Translations under genes and position numbers: made by a program | Origin: Lytechinus pictus | Taxonomy: Eukaryota | Length of the DNA: 64,000 nucleotides | Reading direction: 5' to 3' | NCBI RefSeq assembly: GCF_037042905.1 | Contig: NC_087259.1 | Location: 9,176,001 to 9,240,000, forward strand | Shown here: one piece after another, positions 47,471-64,000 of the stretch | Layout of the letters: every line of letters begins with the position of its first letter | Position numbering within the stretch: the stretch's first letter is position 1 | The notes under the pieces: model-generated | Told to the model about the DNA's origin: nothing | The model's input: the letters and a program-made list of their open reading frames with translations, nothing else | Database searches by the model: none

Positions 47471-49510
47471 GTAGTATAATATTTTTTTACCTTGTAGATA
47501 TGGTTTTAGAGTGATTCTTAGTATAAGACGTCACAGTTGTCAAAATCATTTTTCATGGTTATCTCGCAATGTTGCACCGTCTTCGTTTATGTTGGGACAG
47601 TAGCGAGTTTTCGCACCACAACGAAACCGTTTCCAGGAACATAGAAAATGTATTGTCAAATTTCCCTCATGAGAAAGATCAACCAAGTTTGTGCCGAAAA
47701 GTGATGAATGAAAACGACATTTTCGCCCTGGTCTCTGGACGAACGACATATTTTAAAGGGATGGTCCAGGCTGAAAATAATTTCCGTCAGCTCCGCGACT
47801 TAGGACGAAACTGCTGTTCCGGTTCACCAATTTTCGAGAAAGGCCTCCCAGCTGTCCATTGTCATTTGACGGGCATTTTCAATACATTTACTGCGTTCTT
47901 GAATTCTTTCTGCGTCGCGGTGCGAATTGGTGTCCATTGCACTTCATGTGTTCTTGATGTCCAGTGACATGACTTGCATGAACTGTGCAAACGAAATCGT
48001 TAATTTCCAAAACATAATGATACAAATTTATGTCTTCTGTTATTTGGATTGGGTAAAGCTGCTGCTCTCTGACGTGGGCTCGAACCTCGAACGTGCGTAT
48101 TAATGTGTAACTTTCTCACGAAGCTAGCATTACAAATGACACATGATTGTAGAGGAATGTCGATGCTTTTCAATTCTACACTTTCATATATGATGATGGC
48201 ACACTAAGAAATTTATCACCGCTCAAACTTGAGTTGCAGAACTTTTTTGAGCGGTTAAGTTGGAGAAGGTGAAAAGTGTGAGCAATATGTGTGTTTAATC
48301 TATGCAATGATTGAGTGAAGGGTTTTTTCGACCAAATAAGTACGGACGTCGATATAGTTCCCTTCTGTTCTGATTGGTTAAGACAATACATGCATTGGGA
48401 AGATGTTAGGTGTATATTTATATGGTTGTCACTGTATTATGGCCTGCAAGGCTCGTCATACAGCTCATGGGTTTTTGTCATTTTTGTAGCAGACCTAATT
48501 GTTGCAAATCAGTATCTGAAGTGCAGACACTGTATGAAGTCCTAATATGCTGATTTAGCAGTTTCGTTTTTAGGGCGAAGCGAGTACTTCAAACTTAATC
48601 TATTATTGAGTGTTAACACCATAATCAATTATTGGATCAGTACAAAAATGCAGTATTGTTTAGAGCTTTCCTGATTTAATTAGATCTCAAACGATTCATA
48701 TTTTCTACACAATAAATAAATCACTATATTCATTACAGATAAGCGAGACATTAGTGTCATAAAATTTACATTACATAAATATTTGTGTTTTTTACAAAAA
48801 TTCCTTCCATGCCCTGCATGTTGTATGTAGTAAAACATAAACAATTGTTCTGCGTTTAAAAATACAATATTGATATACAAATAAATATTACAAAGCAACC
48901 TTGAAAACAATAAATAATGCTGACATTTTTCAATGAACCATACATTTTCCACTTTAAGAAAGCTTAACAACTGTCAAAGAACCTGCATCGAATAATTGAT
49001 GTTTTGACTGCTACCACCATGTCCATATTTCGTATTCTTGATAGCAAAAGCAGTTTACCACGTCAATTATGACTATTCCTTTAAAAAACCACACAAATAC
49101 TGCATATTGATTGATATTCAACACAAATTGTGTTGATAGCATAATGATGTAGGGATACAAATAATTTGTTACACGATTTAAAAACTCTTGTGTCAGATCG
49201 CGAAGCCTCGCGTACCATGATTGATTCATTCTCGGAAGCGTCCGATTTGTAATAGTGTAGTGTAGATTGATTTTTATTATGATATCAAATTATGTTCGCC
49301 TTTGAGCTACACACTATTTATATTTCGAAGAATGGTCCGAATCGGATTCGAAATTGGTTAAAAACCGGATTCCTGACGACATTATCCGAACTGGGACATT
49401 ATCCGAACTAGGCCACATACTTAATCGGCAAGCTTCGTGTCAGCGAACATCCAATATGCAGCGAATCACTTTTCGATTCTTCTCCAAAGTTCCCAACGGC
49501 ATTGTGTTTC

Positions 49511-49669
49511 TCATTCAACGAAATTGTACGTTGCCGAGAAACCCAAAGACGATAAGTTCGAATTCGAAAAAAAGTTTATTCTAAGCCGGTTTCCGGACGA
49601 GACGTAACCGAAGGGGACGTGTTGACCACAGTATATGCTGCTGTAAAATCGCTGGTCGAGGTCTTTGAT
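49511..49669 (-). CDS. Gene B last coding exon: CUB2 C-terminal half and stop
   Basis: acgtag|[52 protein letters not shown]; 159 nt. Confidence 0.9.
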   Translation of the reverse strand: MKDLDQRFYSSIYCGQHVPFGYVSSGNRLRINFFSNSNLSSLGFSATYNFVE

Positions 49670-52600
49670 CTACGTTGAAAAGAAAAAAATAAAATGAACA
49701 AAGAAAATTATTAAAAAGTGGTAACATTGCACACTTTTTTTAGGGGGGGGGGGGTGAGACAGTATTGGTTATAGTGTATTTTTGCTTTGCAGTAGTGTTC
49801 TCGATTAAAGGGATGGTCCGGGCTGAAAGTATTCATAGTTTAATAAATAGAGTAGAATTCACTAAGCAAAATGCCGAAAATTTCATCAAAATCAGATAAC
49901 AAATAAAAAAGTTATTGAATTTCAAAATTTAGCGATGTTTTTTTTTAAACAGTCGTCATGAATATTCATTAGGTGGGCTGATGATGTCACATCCCCACTT
50001 GTTCTTTTGTATTTTATTATATGAAATTAGGTTTATTCAAATTTTTTTCTCCAAGAACTAGAAAAATTGGATTGACAACTGATTTAGTGCATTAGATATT
50101 TATTGTTGCAACTTATTTTATTATAAGCATGATAAGGGAGACATATTATTCACACAAGTATGAAATAATGAAAGAAATATGATTTTATGTAATAACATAA
50201 TAAAACGGAAAGTGGGGATGTGACATCATCAGCCCACCTAATGAATATTCATGATGACTGTTTTCAGGAAATATTGCTAAACTTTAAACTTCAATAACTT
50301 TATTATTTGTTATCCGATTTTGATGAAATTTTAGGCATTTTGTTCAGTAAATTCTACTTTATGTATTAAGATATAAATATTTTCAGCTCGGACCATCCCT
50401 TCAAAGGGAAATCATTTAATAACATCCTTAATCATTCAAAAAAAGTTTGGACTTTATCGCTATTAGGGCAAACTGATGTCCACATTATTCTGCTCTCGAG
50501 TCCAATGTCGTAATTAGTAATCATTATATTAGTTACTGCATAAAAAATAATAAATGTATTATTGCACTATTTTTTTTTGGTAGGCTGGAATTAGTATTTC
50601 CAGGGGACCGTTTAATAAAGCTGTTCGTAAGTTAAGAGCGACTTTAAGAATGACTGGTGAACTTTTCGTACGCGGTAAACCATCGGTAATGAATATACCA
50701 TTTACCAATAGAAAGGATCACCAGCCGTTATTAAAGTCGCTCTTAACTTACGAACAGCTTTATAAAACATGCAGGGGTTAAGCTGCAACCGTAGACTTAC
50801 ACTATCCTATATACAACTAACATGGGTATTTACATTCACTACCGATTCAACCGAAGACAAAAAATAACATTGACAACCTCATGGTTTTGCTGTACATGTA
50901 GGTGTGATGATATCCCAATATGGGAGTATACGCAAAGTGCAAATTGTCAATTTACCAAAATGTGATCTCTTGTTGTCGAGCAGAGGAGTGCATCTTCCAA
51001 TTGCAGGTCGAAGTGGTCGAAGTAGAGATTGATTCTGACGTTGGGAGGGGCAACGATGTGATAGACGCACTGCTGGTCGTTCGGGTAATCCGATGGGTAG
51101 TTGGGACTGGACAAGGTACCTGCGTCTTCTAGAAACACCTGGTCGCAGTCTATGTGATAAGAAACAAAAGAGAGTATACTAATGTAGCAAAATAATCAAG
51201 GATTTCGACTGAAAGCGAAAGAAAAGAAACCCCTAAGCATGTGTAAATATTGTGCGTGTGCTTGTGAGGTTGGTGTGAGTGTGTGTCAAGTGTGTGTGTT
51301 ACCAATAGAGAAATGCAGAAAAAGATGGAGAGAGTGAGAATGAGAGAGAGAGAGAGAGAGAGAGATAGGGGAGTACATGTGGAGTAAGGCAAACTGTAAA
51401 TTTATTTATTATGAAAGAAACTATCAAAGAGTGGATATGCTGTGAAATCTATCATAAACAAGTGGAATGCCTCTGGTCGTCTCACCTGCATCACGCGATT
51501 CAATATAGCAGCAGTGCTGATTTTGAAAACTACTATAACTCGCACAAGATGTTCAGTGATACTTGGTTACTCGTATTTCCACGTTTTATGAATTAGACCA
51601 ATACACTTATAGAGATATGATGGCAATTCAACAAATACCCCCAACGTGGCCAAAGTTCTTTGACCTTACATGACCTTTGACCTTGATCATGTGACCTGAA
51701 ACTCGCACAGGATGTTCAATGATACTTGATTACTCTTATGTCCAAGTTTTATGAACTAGACCAACACACTTTCAAATTTATGGCTGTAATTCAACAAATA
51801 CCCCAATTTGGCCAAAGTTCATTGACCCTAAATGACCTTTGACCTTGATCATGTGACCTGAAACTTGCACAGGATGTTTAGTAATACTTGATTACTATTA
51901 TGTCCAAGTTTCATGAATCAGATCCATAAACTTTCAAAGTTATGATGGTAATTCAACAGATACCCCCAATTCGGCCAAAGTTCATTGACCCTAAATGACC
52001 TTTGACCTTGGTCATGTGTCGTGAAACTCATGCAGGATGTTCAGTGATACTTGATTAACCTTATGTATAAGTTTCATGAACTAGGTCCATATATTTTCTA
52101 ATTTATGATGACATTTCAAAAACTTAACCTTAGGTTAAGATTTTGATGTTGATTCCCCCAACATGGTCTAAGTTCATTGACCCTAAATGACCTTTGACCT
52201 TAGTCATGTGACATGAAACTCAGGCAGGATGTTCAGTAATACTTGATTAACCTTATGGCCAAGTTTCATGAACCAGGTCCATATACTTTCTAAGTTATGC
52301 TGTCATTTCAAAAACTTAACCTCAGGTTAAGATTTGGTGTTGACGCCGCCGCCGCCGTCGGAAAAGCGGCGCCTATAGTCTCACTCTGCTATGCAGGTGA
52401 GACAAAAACTATTCGATTGCACGTACCAGATATTGGTATCGAAACTGGGATAAAGCGATACGATAATGTGTACCCTCTGTCGTCTGCTGTTGTTATAAGA
52501 TCGAATTGAAGTATGCTGCCTGTCGATGTCCAGTTGAAATTTGTAAATGAGTTGCATGCACTGTATACATTCTCTTCGTCCTTCACACGGAATAATTCAC

Positions 52601-55600
52601 CTAATACAACAAGAATTGAGAGCGATTCGATAAATAATTATTCCTAGATATTTGATGCTACTGCAATTAATCTTCAGAATACTTTATTTTAATGCTATAC
52701 AAAAATCGAAAATATAGTGAAGAAAACAATAATCATTTTCTCACTGAACCTCGAATTTAGCGGTCCTTCAGCTTTTGACTTTTTATTTTTATTCGAGGCT
52801 GTAACCAAAATAGGCTTCAAAACATGTAATGCAACTGCATGTAAGTCTTAAAATATATTTGATGGAATCAGATATTCAGTCACCCAGCCTCTATAGTATC
52901 TTTTATTTCTATTAATACAATTTAGTACAAATATATTTGCTGGAAAATTGGATGACAATGATGTACAAGCATGTGGATAATACCAGCCTTCGCAATTGCA
53001 ACGGGGACATACTGTACAAATTAGAAAATCCATTAAAAATGCCCTTCAAATCATAATGAACAGCTTGATAGATGTTTTCGTCGAAAATTGGTGAATGGGG
53101 ACATCAGATCGTCCTAAGATTTGAAGCTGACGAAAAAATACAAATAAATGTATGTCGTTTGTCCAAAGTCCAGGACGACACTGCTACTTTGATTAACCGA
53201 CTTTCGACGAAGGCTGTTTTCTCATGAAAGGCTTTTGACAATAGGTTCTCAACGTTCCAGAAAGCGTCCGCGTAGGGATTTGCGAAAACTCGCTAATGAT
53301 GACGGTGATATCAACAATTGCGTACTGACCTAATGAGCAATCTATAGTGACGACTTCGAAATAGACGAGGACCACGTAACCAAGCGGTGCGACGACAACT
53401 ATACTCGACAAAGAGCCATCTGTTGACCCCAATTTCTTAATAGTTCCACGGTCATGTGTGAGAAAATTATCGTCTGAAACAGTGAAGAAGAAATTACCAT
53501 ATTATTGATATCTGGATTTTGATAGTTTGAACTTATATCACGCTGATCATGAGATTTGTAATGATATGAATAATGACAAGCGAAACTGTCAGCGGAATCT
53601 GCTAACTCTCACTCACATAGGACAATATCAATTTTACTTTATTTAATATCTAATTTTGCAAAGTTTACAATGGATAGTTCAACCAGGAAATTGTTTGTAA
53701 AGAAATGGAAATAATGGAACACACGCACGTCATCTCCCAGTTCTTCGTGACATTTATTCAGTCACCATTCCCGGAGCTTCCGTCTACCAGGAACGAAAGG
53801 TTCCTGTACAATTGCAGATCGCAACAGTTTCACTTACCTGGACGAATAGCAGGAGGCTCACTGACTCCTCCGGGTTGAGCCGTTGTCCCCGTGACGTTAT
53901 ATTCCACCGGATGGGAAGAAGATTCTATTGTTAATGGTGTCGTCGTGACGCACTCACATGGCTCCGACGTATGGGGCTTGGGCTCCGGACACTCCTCGTC
54001 ATCAAGTTGGGTCAGGAAATCAGAGCCTGTTCGGCAAAGCGCCAGACGGGTCCTACTAGCACAAGGCTTACACTGTGGAATTACAGACACGGTTTCCTTA
54101 GTCAATGATACCTACGTTTTGTACGGGAACAGAATTGTATTTCCAAGCAAGAGATAATTGAGTACTCGATCTGATTTAATTTAAATAAACTTTTTAAACC
54201 TTGATTACAGGTAGTTATGAACTTTGTTGTCATGTTACCACAATATGCTACAGATTTTTTTAGGGATGCCTTCAAACAATTCCTTGTTATTAGGTATAAA
54301 GTGTCAATCGAAATTCAATTCTTACCATTTGGAAAGTATGGAAAGTATTTGATTTAATTGAACTGTAACAACGCTTATTCTGCTAGATGCGAACTTTCAT
54401 CTAATAATTTCTCTTCTTGCACCATAGAACGGGTTGATTATGTTTTTTTCGAAATCTGAAGTAAAAATGTTCTACCTCAAACCAAAATTTAAAAAGGAAG
54501 AGCGAACCCCCCCCCCCCGCTGTCTTTGTCTTGGCGCTTCCTCATGAGCTTGGGTAACAACAATCGTTCAATGTTTAAGTCAACTATTGAACAGTAATTA
54601 GGGCCTACCTCAGACCAGGAGCTCATCACCCACGTCCCTGGGCAATCAGGCAGGTCTGTACAGGGTTCGGCAGCGTTTGGCTTTTCCGCGCCGTCGCAGA
54701 AAGAGTCATCCACAACCCGAACCCCTTCAACTGCGAAGAGCAGACATACCACGACTCGGGAGCGCACCCCCTCGCCACAGGTGGCACTGCAAGTGGTGTT
54801 CAAGTCCGCCAGGAACCACCTGAATTGATAATTATGGAGAGCATGATTATCAATATGGGACGCGCATCTTGTGGTGCAATCATGATTCATAACAATATCA
54901 GAAGCTCTTGTTGCCAGTGGCTTATATAAAAAGAGCGTTCCAATCCAATCCACTATCTTTATGCTAATTGAAAGCATCCCCCATTATCATCAACAACAAC
55001 AACAACAGTCAAGCTATATGAGTATTCGGTTTAGCACATCTTCTAGGCTATCACAAAAACATGTTGAAATGGTGCCCCTTGAGTCTTTGACCTGGTATTC
55101 TTTCGTTATTCGTAAGATATTTTTTTTCGTCGTTTTTGTTTTTATCATTTTCCCCGTTATCTTGTTTTTCTTTTTGTTCTTCTCATTCTTCCTCCTACTC
55201 TTATCTTGCCCATCCGTGCGTTTCCCTTGTTCTTGTTCTTGTACTTCTTATTCCTCCTCTTCTTATCTTGCTCATCCGTGTGTTTGTTAAAGCAACTGGT
55301 CCACACACACTTCGTCTACGTTCCGTTTGGTCTCACCCCATATGACCTAACCCTACTTCGTCTACAACCAGTTCGTCAACTATAGCCATTTCCCTAATTG
55401 CCATCTACCCATTTTTTTTTTTTTTTTTAGTTAGGCTATACCCACGCTTCGTCTCATATCCACTTGGTCTAAAACCGCATCATAATATACACTGTTAGAA
55501 GAATTGTTTATGAACCAAATATATTACTCTACACTCTTATTCCAACTTCCATTTTCACCTTGGGGGACAATCGTCCTCCCGGCAGGACTCCACGTGGGGA

Positions 55601-58600
55601 ACCGGTCGGCTATTTACGTCGCAGAGGGCGTCGTTAACAAACTGGACACCGACGACGTCGACACATCGAACTACTTCCATTCGAGTACCTACCAATCAAA
55701 TGAATTGAACAAACACTGTTATATTAATTTGCAATTAAAACTGTATAAATTATTTTCTCGTAATAAGGTTCTTTGTGTTTTCTGTTTTGCGTTAGCAATT
55801 CCCCCCAAAACACGAAATGCATGTTCTCAATCTTTGACACTATGATGAACAAACATGGTAAGGGGAAAATAGCTTACCATCGCCACAAGTCACGCTGCAT
55901 TCCCCTCCGGACTTAGCCCAGATGTGAGTAACAGGAGTCGGGGTGGGCGTTGGGTTAACTACACTGTCACTGACGTAGTAGACATAGTGGATATTGGCGG
56001 AAGCTATTCCCAAGGATGAAGCAGCGAAGGCCTGTATTTCTATGGGGTGTAATGTGGGCCCCGCTATTCTGTTCAGAGAGAATATAAAACAAACCAAAAC
56101 CAAACAGAAAAAAAATATTCGGTGTTTGATTGGAAGAATAATGTGAAAACAATGTATATAAACTTCCAAACGTTTCTAAAATGTTGATAAAGGTATGATT
56201 ATCTGATAACGTGAAATATATTGGAATATCATCTTATAGTCAAATCTTACAAAAGTTCGGTTACCATTGAAACACTTTCAATTTACTATTTATTTGTAAA
56301 ACATAGAACTTTCAAGCGTTAAAGTTTTTCTTTTTTATGGTCCATGGCATGTAAAAACACTATATAAAGATTTTATGCTGACCCCATTAATGAGAAGTTG
56401 ATTCATATACAGAAAAAAGAGAGAAAAGGTTGATGCAGATCTTTTTCTTTTGATTCTGTTTGGAATCATGACAGAATTTTCATGTAGAAGCACAGGAAAG
56501 ATCTACAGCATAGGTTTGTATTTCGTGTCAATTTTATCACCCAAGTTTTCAAGGATTTCTACCTTGAAGTTCATAATGATACATTAGTAATGGAGACCCG
56601 AGGATTCAAAATGGGCGTGTTGTCGAAGAGCATTTCATTTTATCAATAAATCGCCGCTAAGACCAAAGAATAACCTGCCCTTTTAATAACGAATAATGTA
56701 CGATGTGGCATGGCTTGTGAACGTGATTGAACTAAAGTCAGATTAAGATTATTGAATCATTCTATTTTCATATTCATTAAAGTTCATTTTCATACTTAGA
56801 TTTACATGTTATGATAGAAAATGAGACTTAGAATACATTAAAGATGATTTTTTATGACCCCAAAAAGTTCAAAATTGTTATCTTTCAATTTTGTTACTCT
56901 TACAGAATGACTTCCTGGCCTTGTGACAGCTGATAATAGACTGTGATGTTCTCAAACCAGTACTCCCATCTTGGCGGCCTGGTCTGACTACTGCCACCGA
57001 TGACAAGCTCTCCGTTTATCATTACATCTGATTAGGTGAAGGAGAAAAGCGACGGATCAGCGAAATGGGAGGAGCGAGGTGATTTTTAGAATATTGGAAT
57101 CTGATGGGCACATTGTACATTCGCACCATCGCATCTTTACATCAACATCAATCACGTGATTTGAGGTATAGTAAATTAGCAATAAAACGTTTTAACAAAA
57201 ATTCGTTATCTCATTTATATGGCTGCAAACTATTGCTTTTCACTCATGTTTTTGGTTAATAGTCGAAATCTACCAATTTCAACGTACATGTAATCTTGTG
57301 CCATTGATCAAAGTCATTCACTGTAAATGATCATCTTGTAAATCCATTCTTACTTTGAAGACCTTACTTGCTTGAATTTCAAAGCGGACTTACCCATGAA
57401 TGTTGAGGTATTTGTATTTACCGCGCTGAATGACGTCACACCTTTTGGGATGGTCAAAAACGTGCTGAATTCTGCATAAAGAAAATACGTAACATACTTT
57501 AATGAACGAAATTCATAACATAGAAAAGGCTGTATTATAAGGACTCTAATTTGTGTAATATATATAACCTTAAGGCTATTTTATGTACCTTGTCCATGGC
57601 TGTTATAGGAGCTATATACTTAATTTTTATCCGATGAACTTTTTAATGAGTGCTATTGCCTCGCTGACCACAGCTCATTGACAATATTTAACTCCGTGCC
57701 TCCTAGTTTATCATGTTATTACCTAGTTTCCTTCGATCATATTTGCCTCGTGAGAGATGAAATGTCTACTTTAAATGTTCGGTTGATTGATAAGGATTTA
57801 TTTCATTTCATTTTTAACAATTAAATTACAAAATTATGCGAAATATATTATGACGTAATAGCATGAAATATAATGTTATTTTGGATAACCTGTGGGATTA
57901 AAGAGAAAATTTTGACTAAAAAGGAATTCGAAGGGTAAATCAAGGACCTTACGTTGTTCGGATAAGTTGAGTTGCAAAGAACCGTCTACGCTGCGACAAG
58001 TTGATCCGTTCCCTCCGCATACCCGGCATTCGTCGAATCTTACGCCGGAGTATTGGTAACCGTCACATCCGAATTCTCGGCACGTCCCCTGCACGCATAC
58101 GCGCATCTCGTTGTAATCCAACGAGCAGCGCGTTCCATCCATATAACCACCATCACGTCGGTCCAATACGCGCACTGTTTCCCCAGTAGCCGAAGCCAAA
58201 TCGGCCTGGCACCATAGCTCACATAACTGATCTCCTATAAAGCAGAATCGTAAAAAGAAATTTACCATTAATATATTTTTATCTATATTTAATTAGGGGG
58301 GAAATCAATCTTTGTTCAATCTTTGTTCAAACTTTTTTTTAGATCATCATGACACACACACGAATGGAAATACATGTTGTATGTTAATGCATTCTTATAG
58401 GCCGACTTTCAAAGTATGATATAAAATATGTGTAAACGTGGTTCTTGAATTCTCCATTTTCCTAGTCCTTTTAACGTTTGCAACAAATTTTCACTGCACG
58501 TGTGTGTCGACAGGCCGACCTTTTTTTTACAGTACACAAAACAATTTTCACTAAATATTACAGTCATATAAAAAAAAGGTAGCGGTGTTAATCGAAGAAG

Positions 58601-60501
58601 TATTAAAACAATCATTTTATCTTAATAAGACAAAACGTCCAGCAATTATGAATAACTTAATATTTAAACCGAGAGTTTCAATGACATAGTGAGAGTTAGT
58701 TTAATCATGTTGATCAGCTAGAAAATCGTGCGAGGTGACGTGGCCGAGTGGTCTAAGGCGCCCAAATACACCATGAAATTCCGGGGTTCGATTCTCAGCA
58801 AGGCCCTTGACCACTTATCTACATTGCTCTTTTATCTGGCATCAAATATATATTTATGCTTTATTGATACCAACGTGTAGACGTGTTTTAAAAAATCAAT
58901 AATAATAACATCACAAAATTTATCAATAAAATAATATGAAAAAGCGAGCAAGAGAGGAAGACAGAAAGGAGGAAAAATGGAACCAGGAAAGATAGAAACG
59001 GGAAACGAAGAAAGCAATTTAAACATACCCACAGAAACCAACTCAATGGAACTTTTTATATACAAGAATAATTTGAATACCTGATTGGTTGTCAGTAGTG
59101 GAGGTCCAGGTTAGGTCAGCAAGACCGTCGTATGGTTCACGACTAGACGACGTACACTGCTCATTACGGAACTCTCTTTGTGTCGTTTCACATGGCTGCC
59201 GGTTAAATTGCCGAGTAAAAAGACAAATTATTGAATAGATATGTAAACCAAATTAAAGTTATTTTCAGATAAAGAAAAAAAATCCTCTAACATTTTGAAG
59301 TATTTTTTTTACCGACTTTAATTCCTATTTCATATCTCCTTTGCCCCCGAATCGTCTTAAGACCAATACCAATGTGACAAGAAGAACAATTGTATCAACC
59401 ATATAAATTGAATTTCTAGATAAATAACTGAAAACTCCATTCATTTGGAATTTCTTTGATAACATTATTTTCCTTTACACCATTATTGATGATACAATGT
59501 ATAAGCCTCATTTAACAAGGTTATCTGTAAAGAGATGTAAGGTGAAAGTCCCAGTGGAAGAATACATTGTATGTACATGTATAAAGGATATTAGTATTCT
59601 GTTGAGAAAAAAAACCAAGAGGTAATGTAATTTACCTGAACGTTACACATGTTGGCTACGATTGATTGACCCTTACAGGATTCCCCTCCGTTTCGTGGCC
59701 TGTGATGATTACATTAAAAATAAAAAGGATATAGAGAATGACATACTTATAAAAAGGGGTAATAATAAATGATAATCCATAGGTCACAGATCAAGGAGTT
59801 TTATGAACAAATACATTTTATAATTTTCTTACATGATTATTCGACATAATAACATCAGAAATCGTTAATGGCTTTTGATATAATTTTTTTCCGCTGGAAC
59901 TATTTCGAATATGTTTGTGATAGCAATGAAGCTGATCATTATATTTCATTTTTGTGTATTATTTTGTTTATTTGGGGTCACCGTTTTAATAAAAAATAAT
60001 ATAGGATTTGTATAGCGCACTTATCCACCTTGCTAGGTGCTCAAGGCGCTCCTATATTACCCCGGCTATAAGCTAGTCTACCGATTCCGGTGCGCACAGC
60101 TTTTTGAGGAATTACTTCCTGCTGGTACCCATTTACGTCACCTGGGTTGAGTGCAGCACAATGTGGATAAATGAACCACCCCAAAATCATGAAAATGGGA
60201 GAGTGGGATCGAAAGAAAGAGTGAGAGGAAGAGAGAGAACGAGAGAGTTCCCTTAGAAAATAAATTTGTAAATTAAATCCTATTTTAAAGGTTAAGGAAA
60301 AAACTTACTCTGGATCATTGCAATACCGGTGTCTCAGCTCAACACCCCCGCCACACGTTCTGGAACAAGGGCCCCATGTCGCGTCCCAAGGGGACCAGCC
60401 CCCGTCGATTGGCGTGTTGGGCCGGTCCACACAGGTGCCCCCGAAACACCACTGCATGAAGAAGAAATATAGTGATAATTGCGCGCGTGTCGGGGCGGCA
60501 T

Positions 60502-60532
<31 letters not shown>

Positions 60533-63500
60533 GAGAAGTTAGGGTGTGTGTGTGTGAGGATGTGTGTGTGTGTGAAAGTGGGGGGATATGTTAGAGTGCG
60601 GGAGGGTGGGTTAATGAGAGTGGATAAGCGGGTATGTGGAAATTTTTAGGCCTGCTTTTCCTTCCTAATTTGGTTGAAATGAAAGATTTGATTTTTTTTT
60701 GCATCTTAAGTTTGACAGGGAAAGATTTGGTGTAAAGTGTATGTGAATTTCCTGTAAAGAGTTGCAAGAGAAACATAGATTTTAAAAATTCTGGGGCACC
60801 TGTCCTCTTGTCTCCGCTGCGTACCAGTTATGCAGCTGTTGTTGCCAAAATACACTGAATCTATACAATATTTGAATTAAAAAATATAGGGTGGTGAATG
60901 AATCGTAAATTGAAGTGATATATACGGTATATTTAGTGAAATGAATGTGTGTGTGTGATTTCGGAGAGGATGTGTCAGGGGGTGTGTGTGAGGGTGTGTG
61001 GGGGGGGGGGGGAAACTTACCTTATTTTCCCCGCAGGTTGTACCGTCTGCGATAGCAACCCCCGTGCGCGAGCAAAGTCCGTTTGGAAATCTACAAAACA
61101 TTTGCGGGCATCGGTCCTGAAGTAATGGAAGACAAAAATTGGATTTACACCTTATTTAAAAACAAAAATCTGAATTACTTAAAATGCAAAGAAATGCATT
61201 TTGCAATTATATTGAACAAACAATTTAGAGCTCCATGTCTTTATCCATTATTATTTAGTCCAGTTCTGACAAAAAATCAGGAGTAGATATCTAAGGGGGA
61301 AAATATTTCCTAGATCATGTAGATATTTACCGTAAGCTTTTTTAATATTAAATTCGCTCTGATAATTATTTCTGGATTTGCGAAGGAGTGTTTTTTTTAC
61401 TATTTTTTTTTACATGGGCGAGGGCAGATTGATGACCTTTCCCAAAGAATCCGCAACTGAATCAAATAACAAGCAACGGTTTTCATAAATCGAGTTTACC
61501 TTACAACAAGGCAACGAAGTTTATACTAATGCACATCGTTTTTGCGAATCATTAAACAGACAATATCTTGATTATGCATTGTATTTTCTTGATAACATTT
61601 AAAAGTAAGTTGCTATTCTGTACAGCAAAGACATAAAGGGGTACTCCAGGCTGAAAACAATATTATTTGAAAAGATAAAGAAAAAGCAAACAGAACACCT
61701 AAAATGTCACCAAAATCGAACAAGGAATAACAAATTTATGACATTGCAAAGATTTGCATTATTTCGGTGAAACAGTTACATTTTTGTATTTATGATGTTC
61801 AATGGGCAAATTGATAATGTCACATCCCCACTTGTCATTTTTTTAATTATTATTCTTATTTATTTACTATCTTTATAAGCCAAAACAATTTAGGCGATTA
61901 TTAAAATGTAAATAGACATGTCCTGCAATGAACTTATATTATTCCATGGAAAGTCTGAAAAGAGTTTCATATTTGGCTTTCGTAGATTTGTCTTAACTCT
62001 TATTTTTATTTGCACGTACTTGGACTCCGTATATAGGAAGGGCTGTGTCCGTGCATGCACCGCTGAAGTACTCCGAGTACTGCAAACATTGTTCATCGGC
62101 GTCGTATATCTCACCCGGAAGTCTCTCGCCTTCAAAGCCAGATAGAACTTCCGGAATGTCATTCAAACAAGTGACGGTCGGATACCTGTAGGAACCAAGT
62201 TTGAAAACTCAATACCTTTTTCACACGTTTATGTAAACTTTCCTTCTAAGATAAAGTTTCAAGCTGATTTTTATTGATTTCAAATCCAAACATAAAGATT
62301 ACAATCAAAATAAATATTAACAATTTTATAAACTTCAAAATAAACTTGAAAGATTATCTAACCATGGCCGTGCACAGAAGGGGGGGAGGAGCAGTTCCCC
62401 CCCCCCAAAAAAAAAAAAAAGTGAAAACTTACATTTTTTACTGAAAATTTTCAAAAAAAATAACCGAAAGTATCCTTCAATAATTCAATTTACAAAATGC
62501 AAAAGTGCTCCAAGGACAAGCTCGATCGCTTTGATCATTCACTTTCGTTTTCTCTCGAAAACGTTTACACGTCCTGCCTCACCAGCAAAATATTTACCCA
62601 TCCCCTTCCCCAATATAGGCTACACTTAACCTTAGTTTAATTTTAAACTGAAGAACGAGGCAATAACCATTTCAAATTAAATAAAAAATGGAAATAAATA
62701 TTTTTGCGATTTTTTTGCTGTTTACCAATGAAAGATCTTTAATCAATCACTTTATAGACCAAACTTTTTCCATTCTGTTTTGCTCATGTTTAGTGCATAT
62801 TGAATTAAGACTTTATAAATAAACATACGTGCCTTGTTGGTGAATCGCAAATAGAACATGTTTTATCATTATCTATTCTGTTTTATGGATTACATGGTCA
62901 TCTATGCATCATTTTCTGTTTGAAATATTCTTAGAGAATAGTTTTACTGACCGGAGAAATGCGTCGAATTGTTCCCTGCTGCACTCTGACCATAGATAAG
63001 AACCACTCCCGCCAATTCGGCTTGATGACATTATGTTTGCCCCGGCAGGACAACCTGTGTCTGCATCGTGTAGCATTCCGACTCTGCAAAGCGTTTGAAG
63101 TCATTATTAACATCAGCCATAATTATTTACTAATTATTCAACTCATCTATATATTAATGCACCCCACATTTGTCGATTTATGATGAATTTCATGGCACTG
63201 TCTTAAAAAAAATTAATATACCTTCACTTGACATTATGTAAACAAGTGATTTTTCCTAACAATGCCATAATAAAAGTTTTGTAAACCTCCCGATTGATTT
63301 TTTCCCTCATGATATTATTCATCCTGCTTCGCAGATTTCATCTTCGTTTATCATTCATTATGTATTTACAACAGCGAATAAAATGATTGGTAGGCTCAAT
63401 TTTATAGCAGGATGGCGGCAAAGGGTAGGCCTACATTTTATTTAGAACGATATTTGGTTGAGTGTACTTACGTGTGGCCAATTTCATGAGCAATGATGAG

Positions 63501-63615
63501 ACCGGATGAAGGGCCATTGTCTTCATTCACTGAGCATTGGTGAGTATCCGAGCATGCACCTCGCAAATTGGCAATCCCCAGTAGGTACTTATTCTGTTTC
63601 AGTTCGATATCATGC
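49511..63615 (-). CDS. ADAMTS13: Gene B (last 18 coding exons, 5'-incomplete): ADAMTS metalloprotease with ADAMTS13-type layout (M-D-T-C-S-3xTSR-2xCUB)
   Basis: Phase-compatible exon chain of 2782 nt ending in TGA at 49511-49513. HEIGHTVGMLHD zinc motif, Met-turn (IMS) and two C-terminal CUBs. ADAMTS identity is near-certain; ADAMTS13 orthology is inferred, so read the symbol as 13-like. Confidence 0.8.
49809..50400. mobile_element. Kolobok-like MITE (AGGGATGGTCCGG subfamily)
   Basis: TTAA|agggatggtccgg...cggaccatccct|tcaa. Confidence 0.85.
50956..51149 (-). CDS. Gene B exon: CUB2 N-terminal half
   Basis: (D)[35 protein letters not shown]...CSTTRDHIL; 194 nt, phase 1-0. Confidence 0.93.
51456..52408 (-). 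mobile_element. Helentron/DINE-like element with ~162-bp tandem units
   Basis: Subterminal inverted gtctcacctgca / tgcaggtgagac; (GCC)n near the 5' end; T-rich insertion site; four TGACCTTTGACCT motifs. Confidence 0.78.
52427..52600 (-). CDS. Gene B exon: CUB1 C-terminal half
   Basis: (G)[18 protein letters not shown]...[12 protein letters not shown]...[11 protein letters not shown]; 174 nt, phase 1-1. Confidence 0.85.
53030..53240. repeat. Dispersed repeat (tcgtcctaagatttg.agctgacgaaaaa family)
   Basis: Related copies at ~35200-35400 (same orientation) and ~47550-47890 (inverted). Confidence 0.55.
53330..53473 (-). CDS. Gene B exon: divergent CUB1 N-terminal half
   Basis: (D)[11 protein letters not shown]...[24 protein letters not shown]|gtcagt; 144 nt, phase 1-1. 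Confidence 0.82.
53838..54072 (-). CDS. Gene B exon: TSR4 end and Thr/Pro linker
   Basis: [13 protein letters not shown]...[16 protein letters not shown], then TTTPL...PAIRP; 235 nt, phase 0-1. Confidence 0.85.
54609..54819 (-). CDS. Gene B exon: TSR3 and start of TSR4
   Basis: [25 protein letters not shown]...[12 protein letters not shown]; 211 nt, phase 2-0. Confidence 0.92.
55559..55688 (-). CDS. Gene B exon: TSR2 C-terminal half
   Basis: (G)[42 protein letters not shown]; 130 nt, phase 1-2. Confidence 0.9.
55878..56068 (-). CDS. Gene B exon: spacer end and TSR2 start
   Basis: [12 protein letters not shown]...IHYVYYV...[16 protein letters not shown]; 191 nt, phase 2-1. Confidence 0.9.
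56904..57027 (-). CDS. Gene B exon: spacer
   Basis: (D)[11 protein letters not shown]...[15 protein letters not shown](L); 124 nt, phase 1-2. Confidence 0.82.
57394..57471 (-). CDS. Gene B exon: spacer start
   Basis: [25 protein letters not shown] (IPxG motif); 78 nt, phase 1-1. Confidence 0.85.
57953..58234 (-). CDS. Gene B exon: Cys-rich domain
   Basis: GDQLCELWC...DGTRC...[13 protein letters not shown]...[13 protein letters not shown]; 282 nt, phase 1-1. Confidence 0.94.
59081..59195 (-). CDS. Gene B exon: TSR1 end and Cys-rich start
   Basis: [38 protein letters not shown]; 115 nt, phase 0-1. Confidence 0.88.
59636..59699 (-). CDS. Gene B exon: TSR1
   Basis: [21 protein letters not shown]; 64 nt, phase 2-0. 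Confidence 0.9.
60309..60451 (-). CDS. Gene B exon: disintegrin end and TSR1
   Basis: WCFGGTCV...[33 protein letters not shown]; 143 nt, phase 0-2. Confidence 0.94.
61021..61116 (-). CDS. Gene B exon: disintegrin-like domain
   Basis: [32 protein letters not shown]; 96 nt, phase 0-0. Confidence 0.9.
62020..62185 (-). CDS. Gene B exon: catalytic end and disintegrin start
   Basis: [11 protein letters not shown]...[12 protein letters not shown]...; 166 nt, phase 2-0. Confidence 0.92.
62952..63083 (-). CDS. Gene B exon: third zinc His and Met-turn
   Basis: [21 protein letters not shown]...[15 protein letters not shown]; 132 nt, phase 2-2. Confidence 0.93.
63472..63615 (-). CDS. Gene B exon: catalytic HExxH
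   Basis: [47 protein letters not shown]; 144 nt, phase 2-2. Confidence 0.95.
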
Positions 63616-64000
63616 CTAGACCATGAAGGTATAAAAACTGTACATCAACTGAGTCACCTTCGTAACCAAAAGTACTAGCATTTTGTTATTGTGGCAAACG
63701 CAATTCCGTTTAAAAGAAATCGGGAACATCACAAACAAACAAAACATTGGTCAGACAAAGCGCGTACTTGTTAACTTTCGTCATACCCTTCTTGTCACAA
63801 GGCGTTCAATCATTCTTCTGCCCGTATTTTGGGAAAGTTTGAGGCTTGTACGTGTAAGCGCAGGACATTCTCAAATATGAAAAACATTACCCAGTTTTAG
63901 GTGTGTGGCAATTTTGATATTATTTTTTATAAATCACAGCATATTGAAGAGATATACTAATATACACTGCACATGTATAATTCAAATTTTATGTACCTTA

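Follow-up and report, generated by a model that had tools for sequence, protein, structure and literature searches.

An ADAMTS13-like gene was analysed in a stretch of 64,000 nucleotides (nt) from the sea urchin Lytechinus pictus (hereafter the window, G000:C15:9176001-9240000, from a genome of 812 Mb), where it lies on the minus strand in AT-rich eukaryotic DNA. It was found to be very probable that this is an intact, transcribed gene of 25 coding exons, that its product of 1327 amino acids (aa) belongs to the ADAMTS13 clade, and that this product ends in a tail homologous to the CUB1-CUB2 pair of ADAMTS13.

Exons 8-25, about the 3' two thirds of the gene, occupy window positions 63615-49511 (minus strand), coding exon 8 beginning at 63615 and the stop codon in exon 25 ending at 49511. 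Exons 1-7 were located at 64328-80330 (window numbering continued), at most 16.3 kb past the window end in the 29 kb of flank that was read, and encode a signal peptide, then a prodomain that is about 250 aa long and contains furin sites (RRRR/RNRR), and finally the N-terminal half of the metalloprotease (M) domain, of which only the C-terminal half lies within the window. Spliced alignment of the window and the upstream flank gave 25 exons, with GT-AG at each intron, and a product identical to P0152, the NCBI protein 'ADAMTS13-like [Lytechinus pictus]' of 1327 aa. When the Cys-rich exon was used as query in a library-wide search, a 1296-aa Diadema protein collinear with all exons was obtained, which as query in turn led to P0152 and to P0153, 'ADAMTS13 [Strongylocentrotus purpuratus]'. 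Transcription was evident from a 547-nt Logan contig record (runs X1 and X12, from two studies) joining 51149 to 52427, 52598(+2) to 53328 and 53473 to 53838. These joints are introns 23, 22 and 21, with the CT..AC ends expected for GT..AG introns on the minus strand, and they connect exons 24, 23, 22 and 21 at exactly the annotated splice sites; as they run over the CUB exons, the exons of CUB1 are part of a spliced mRNA. A pseudogene or an annotation artefact was also considered, and was rejected on the grounds of the frame kept intact over 25 GT-AG exons, the spliced contigs and the conservation across echinoderm classes.

The domain order in P0152 was found to be signal peptide, prodomain, M, disintegrin-like (D), thrombospondin type 1 repeat (TSR or T) 1, Cys-rich (C), spacer (S), three TSRs, a Pro/Thr-rich linker, CUB1 and CUB2. 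Pfam, applied to single exons and to the whole protein, returned Reprolysin, ADAMTS_CR_2, TSP_1, ADAMTS_CR_3, ADAMTS_spacer1, three TSP1_ADAMTS matches and one C-terminal CUB. The zinc motif HEIGHTVGMLHD, divided between exons 8 and 9, is intact and the Met-turn reads NIMSS; with HExxHxxGxxHD and a Met-turn, followed by D, TSR, Cys-rich and spacer domains, the protein has the marks of an ADAMTS protease (M12B, adamalysin branch). The exons within the window, all taken from the spliced model (further sources in brackets), are the following:
63472..63615, minus strand: exon 8, aa 401-449, M domain with the Cys-less loop (Pfam Reprolysin_3; alignment to 6QIG)
62952..63083, minus strand: exon 9, aa 449-493, VGMLHD, Met-turn and end of the M domain (Pfam)
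62020..62185, minus strand: exon 10, aa 493-548, start of the disintegrin-like domain (Pfam)
61021..61116, minus strand: exon 11, aa 549-580, disintegrin-like domain, ADAMTS_CR_2 (Pfam)
60309..60451, minus strand: exon 12, aa 581-628, end of the disintegrin-like domain and first half of TSR1, with WSPW and CSRTCG (Pfam)
59636..59699, minus strand: exon 13, aa 628-649, second half of TSR1 (D-T-C-S alignment to human ADAMTS13)
59081..59195, minus strand: exon 14, aa 650-688, start of the Cys-rich domain, with PCETTQREF (D-T-C-S alignment to human ADAMTS13)
57953..58234, minus strand: exon 15, aa 688-782, Cys-rich domain and start of the spacer (Pfam; HMMER to PDB)
57394..57471, minus strand: exon 16, aa 782-808, spacer (Pfam)
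56904..57027, minus strand: exon 17, aa 808-849, spacer (Pfam)
55878..56068, minus strand: exon 18, aa 849-913, end of the spacer, without the RY..Y exosite motif, and start of TSR2 (alignment)
55559..55688, minus strand: exon 19, aa 913-956, TSR2 (Pfam)
54609..54819, minus strand: exon 20, aa 956-1026, TSR3 (Pfam; RNA contig coverage)
53838..54072, minus strand: exon 21, aa 1027-1105, TSR4 and Pro/Thr-rich linker (Pfam; RNA splice joint 53473 to 53838)
53330..53473, minus strand: exon 22, aa 1105-1153, first half of CUB1, divergent, first Cys pair lost (alignment; fold; splice joints)
52427..52600, minus strand: exon 23, aa 1153-1211, second half of CUB1 (alignment; fold; joints 51149 to 52427 and 52598(+2) to 53328)
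50956..51149, minus strand: exon 24, aa 1211-1275, first half of CUB2 (Pfam CUB, 3.8e-14; RNA contigs)
49511..49669, minus strand: exon 25, aa 1276-1327 and stop codon, second half of CUB2 (Pfam; RNA contigs)

On the whole protein P0152, Pfam placed the domains as follows:
aa 53-142: propeptide (Pep_M12B_propep)
aa 298-504: Reprolysin
aa 516-588: disintegrin-like
aa 601-651: TSR1
aa 654-767: Cys-rich
aa 772-881: spacer
three repeats: TSP1_ADAMTS
aa 1212-1323: CUB

This domain order and the intact zinc motif had been described in the original prediction, which was made from the sequence of the window, and both were recovered by Pfam and the spliced model on the minus strand at 49511-63615. Four motif likenesses to human ADAMTS13, which had also been put forward, were likewise seen residue for residue in HMMER alignments to the PDB chains 6QIG, 3GHM and 3VN4: the Cys-less loop of the urchin M domain aligned with its ADAMTS13 counterpart, a 16-residue urchin stretch aligned with AEMCNTQACEKTQLEF, and GDQLC and CREFGCDG of the urchin protein corresponded to GDALC and CRTFGCDG, respectively. 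The D-T-C-S part of the L. pictus protein matched that of human ADAMTS13 at 3e-53, a PDB ranking that decides nothing alone because few other ADAMTS ancillary domains are present in the PDB. The M-domain loop lacks the Cys pair of most other ADAMTS proteins, a feature that is shared with ADAMTS2/3/14 and is therefore not diagnostic of ADAMTS13 alone.

The phylogenetic placement was determined from a maximum-likelihood tree of 69 M-to-spacer sequences (IQ-TREE, LG+C20 with posterior mean site frequencies (PMSF), 586 columns), which covered echinoderm, hemichordate, amphioxus and Haliotis/Bulinus-group proteins, vertebrate ADAMTS13, 3/14, 16/18, 8, 9 and 7, cnidarians and sponges, the clades 6/10, 17/19, 1/4/5/15, 12 and 20 lying outside the sampling. 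The L. pictus protein and vertebrate ADAMTS13 were placed in one clade (29 rows, 100/100 support, branch length 0.5), comprising 11 vertebrate ADAMTS13 sequences, nine echinoderm proteins including that of L. pictus, the four proteins of the Haliotis/Bulinus mollusc group and a less compact assemblage to which amphioxus, a hemichordate and a second echinoid paralogue belong. ADAMTS2/3/14 was the sister of this clade (support 96/95), a relationship proposed by Brunet et al. (PMC4349717). The alternative in which vertebrate ADAMTS13 joins ADAMTS2/3/14 to the exclusion of the invertebrate members was rejected by the approximately unbiased (AU) test (p 6e-5), with the caveat that the group had been defined with the tree already known. 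The M-to-spacer identity of the urchin protein was 32-36% to ADAMTS13 and 27-32% to ADAMTS2/3/14, and orthologues with the same tail were found in S. purpuratus, Diadema, a crinoid, a brittle star, sea stars and a sea cucumber. Reciprocal searches that compared a ray ADAMTS13 and the urchin protein exon by exon with the L. pictus genome were dominated by TSR exons, and revealed no more than that the Cys-rich exon of the locus was the best genomic match to the Cys-rich domain of ADAMTS13. On this sequence comparison, the 100/100 clade and the AU result support the membership of the locus in the ADAMTS13 clade and an age of the lineage greater than that of the vertebrates, as had been predicted. 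The prediction had also named the outcome that would have counted against it, a grouping with another clade that implied an independent gain of CUBs; no such grouping appeared in the M-to-spacer tree.

The C-terminal tail provides independent support for common descent, because it is not part of the tree. Pfam detected CUB2 on the whole protein at 1e-21 and missed CUB1, which was assigned by homology (alignment A1, 22 rows) and by fold (AlphaFold2 (AF2) model and Foldseek). Residues 1085-1327 gave one collinear high-scoring segment pair (HSP) spanning both CUBs with amphioxus (4e-30) and Haliotis (5e-26), as well as a collinear HSP with the very C-terminal ends of vertebrate ADAMTS13 (1e-11 and 1e-10). 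The second disulfide of CUB1 and the first disulfide of CUB2 were invariant in alignment A1. The first Cys pair of CUB1 was missing in the three echinoids only, so that the lack of an N-terminal Cys pair, correctly noticed in the original prediction, is a loss confined to echinoids. For the tail, the AF2 model (predicted local distance difference test (pLDDT) 91, predicted template-modelling score (pTM) 0.87) consists of two beta-sandwiches, and every match of this model in a Foldseek search against the PDB was a CUB protein. Only 7B01, human ADAMTS13 CUB1-2, could be superposed over both domains (template-modelling score (TM) 0.72, root-mean-square deviation 4.0, 226 columns), the others reaching about 0.45. 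The homology of the CUB pair, as a unit, to ADAMTS13 CUB1-2 is thus supported by alignment and predicted fold. A terminal CUB was recognised by Pfam in amphioxus, Haliotis, P0081 and every echinoderm member, and was not detected by Pfam in a ray ADAMTS13 at 1e-3; the divergent CUBs are the vertebrate ones. A tail-only database search returned echinoid orthologues and multi-CUB proteins (e.g., cubilin) only, a word-index effect that is uninformative on taxonomic spread.

These results bear on the idea that the protein belongs to some other ADAMTS clade which acquired its CUBs by exon shuffling of its own, the likeness to ADAMTS13 being convergent. In sea urchin genomes, CUB domains are mobile and very common, the NCBI names of the orthologues are inconsistent (ADAMTS1-like, 6-like and 16-like), and the similarity scores to vertebrate ADAMTS13 barely exceed those to ADAMTS18. 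Nevertheless, the M-to-spacer sequences fall in the 100/100 clade, with the AU test in agreement, and the tail, outside the tree, is collinear with vertebrate ADAMTS13 over both CUBs and shares its fixed inter-domain geometry. Tree, collinear tail and 7B01 superposition therefore make an independent gain very unlikely, to the extent that next to no probability is given to it.

Several points weigh against the assignment to the ADAMTS13 clade as an active, transcribed member. Hallmarks of human ADAMTS13, namely the short propeptide, the eight TSRs and the latch residues of spacer and CUB2, are missing in the urchin protein. The branching within the clade lacks resolution, and echinoids have at least two further paralogues in it, because of which the L. 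pictus gene is a co-orthologue and not a one-to-one orthologue of vertebrate ADAMTS13. In the raw rRNA-depleted RNA runs X16 and X17, both deep, the depth on the exons of the gene was zero; expression is therefore restricted or low, not ubiquitous. Finally, the protease activity and the secretion of the invertebrate members are putative.

An EBR1-like gene (EBR1, egg bindin receptor) was observed on the plus strand of the same chromosome at C15:29.65-29.72 Mb (G000:C15:29652001-29662000, L005; 29712001-29722000, L006), about 20.4 Mb from the window. Behind a prodomain and a catalytic exon, in which HEIGHSLGMYHD and the same loop without Cys are present, come numerous consecutive TSR exons and one or more exons for a CUB. 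A single exon of its catalytic domain was compared, and this was closest to members of the ADAMTS13 clade (hemichordate, Bulinus and vertebrate ADAMTS13). Judged by this likeness, EBR1 may be a repeat-expanded paralogue of the ADAMTS13 clade. EBR1 has been described as an ADAMTS with TSR and CUB repeats (PMC13672419), and the presence of the EBR1-like gene on the same chromosome, along with the affinity of that exon, could suggest that the gene in the window is itself a short member of the egg bindin receptor family, acting in gamete recognition and not as an ADAMTS13-type protease. The chance of this is considered very small. The gene encodes three TSRs and two adjoining CUBs, without alternating TSR-CUB repeats, this compact tail is kept in all sampled echinoderm classes and in amphioxus, and the EBR1-like locus, at a distance of 20 Mb, is a gene of its own.

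The spacer-CUB latch of vertebrate ADAMTS13 involves the spacer residues R660/Y661/Y665 and the CUB2 residues R1326/E1387/E1389, and Kim et al. described these spacer-binding CUB2 residues as invariant from man to fish (PMC8051872). In the L. pictus protein, FAASSLG is aligned at the position of the vertebrate YR(K/R)YGxEY, the vertebrate spacer insertion is missing, and the three CUB2 positions are V, R and N, respectively (alignment A1). Predicted docking of the Cys-rich and spacer domains (aa 654-885) with CUB1-2 (aa 1100-1327) gave a score of 0.25, the mark being 0.34, which speaks neither for nor against such a contact. The suggestion of a possibly ancestral CUB-spacer autoinhibition, also part of the original prediction, is not supported, as the latch residues of both spacer and CUB2 are replaced in the urchin protein; ADAMTS13-style global latency is therefore not to be assumed for it. 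The same replacements bear on a haemostatic role in echinoderms, in which the enzyme would trim a large multimeric adhesive glycoprotein of the coelomic fluid as a forerunner of the cleavage of von Willebrand factor (VWF), with CUB-spacer latency already present. Such a role would agree with the clade membership and with the conservation of the D-T-C-S and CUB1-2 modules, and a YRxY/F-like spacer motif is partly retained in amphioxus and the Haliotis/Bulinus group. With the echinoid FAASSLG in the spacer and V/R/N in CUB2, however, and with no paper naming a sea urchin VWF orthologue found in the literature search, this role is regarded as improbable.

The protein would be made as a zymogen that furin-type convertases process along the secretory pathway, and the mature form would be an extracellular zinc endopeptidase. 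By analogy with other ADAMTS proteases, D-T-C-S exosites may set the choice of substrate, and the rigid CUB pair could serve as a protein-binding module.

The acidic E..D..SD pattern in the CUB2 of echinoids, which we take to be the Ca2+ site of canonical CUB domains, is kept in S. purpuratus and Diadema, with Asp in the SD motif of both P0153 and the Diadema protein; L. pictus has Asn (SN) at this last position (alignment A1). Human ADAMTS13 CUBs show no Ca2+ binding (PMC8051872). A third L. pictus gene of the ADAMTS13 clade was found at G000:C9:25286412-25297056 (minus strand), and is the orthologue of the S. purpuratus protein named 'ADAMTS4' by NCBI (P0179, 902 aa, without CUB); the Diadema relative P0167 ends in one CUB. 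Within intron 23 (window 51300-52430), a tandem array was observed at 51537-52110 (163-bp unit, 3.5 copies), overlapped by a 192-bp repeat. The array reached about 2000-fold coverage in two rRNA-depleted RNA runs, nearly all from first mates and on the plus strand, the reads being mostly of 95-99% identity with A-rich loose ends. It has no Rfam match and looks like a dispersed, highly transcribed repeat family. A search of window 49000-64000 against Rfam gave no match.

Sea urchin ADAMTS13-like genes are already known, since they have been published since 2006 and the L. pictus gene is so named in RefSeq. Two S. purpuratus genes similar to ADAMTS13 are mentioned in a passage of Kelwick et al. 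that cites Angerer 2006 (PMC4448532), and 'ADAMTS13' transcripts are listed in echinoderm papers. The gene itself, annotated and with a published family assignment, adds little in this respect. Brunet et al. rooted the ADAMTS13 group with non-vertebrate deuterostomes and placed the gain of CUBs at the base of the deuterostomes (PMC4349717). A bilaterian origin is suggested here because Haliotis and a relative grouping with Bulinus share both the 100/100 clade and the tail with two CUBs, and it appears somewhat probable that the ADAMTS13 body plan (M-D-T-C-S, few TSRs and tandem CUB1-CUB2) goes back to the bilaterian ancestor and not to the deuterostome base. The results suggest that this origin, which contrasts with the published deuterostome origin of CUB-bearing ADAMTS proteins, is possibly new. 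If true, vertebrate ADAMTS13 would represent a rapidly evolving side branch in which the long prodomain was lost and additional TSRs and the spacer-CUB latch were acquired, and sea urchin EBR1 would be a paralogue of the clade expanded by repeats. Additionally, L. pictus is described as a genetically enabled model, in which the gene offers a tractable invertebrate member of the ADAMTS13 clade. The urchin protease could show what the clade did before VWF-based haemostasis, and whether the CUB pair was first used in substrate capture or in self-inhibition.

Compared with vertebrate ADAMTS13 (6QIG, 3GHM and 7B01), a protease that cleaves VWF within the A2 domain under shear, the urchin protein is alike in its clade, its M-D-T-C-S order, the M-domain loop without Cys, the motifs PCExTQxEF, GDxLC and CRxFGCDG, and the relative orientation of CUB1 and CUB2 (TM 0.72). 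It differs in having a long prodomain of about 250 aa with furin sites and a Pep_M12B_propep match, whereas the propeptide of human ADAMTS13 is unusually short (PMC4448532). About 200 residues precede the M domain in the vertebrate ADAMTS13 entries P0202 (Mobula), P0211 (Heptranchias), P0166 (Sminthopsis) and P0168 and P0189 (frogs); in P0202, the one vertebrate entry with a long N-terminus that was checked, Pfam found no propeptide domain. Possibly not all vertebrates have a short propeptide, or the models of these five entries may carry extra 5' exons. The urchin protein also has three TSRs between spacer and CUBs as opposed to seven (T2-T8), a number that varies among vertebrate ADAMTS13 proteins (PMC8051872), and it lacks the spacer insertion, the R660/Y661/Y665 motif and the CUB2 latch residues. 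Its CUB2, a canonical Pfam CUB, keeps the second disulfide, while its CUB1 is without the first. The procollagen N-propeptidases ADAMTS2/3/14 form the sister clade and share the Cys-less M-domain loop, but are without CUBs in the sampled sequences, PLAC being listed for few of them. EBR1 resembles the urchin protein in its ADAMTS N-terminal part and its TSR and CUB modules, and departs from it in its many TSRs, its alternating TSR-CUB repeats and its length of several thousand residues, the gene in the window having a fixed two-CUB end. The amphioxus ADAMTS (P0050/P0271) and the Haliotis/Bulinus group (P0114 and P0081) belong to the same clade, have the order pro-M-D-T-C-S-TSRs-CUB-CUB and align with the urchin tail over both CUBs; unlike the urchin protein, they keep all four CUB1 cysteines and the YRxY/F-like spacer motif, and P0081 and P0110 carry extra ShK domains. 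The closest counterpart is S. purpuratus 'ADAMTS13' (P0153), a direct orthologue with 82% identity from M to spacer and 80% in the tail, and with the same length and architecture.

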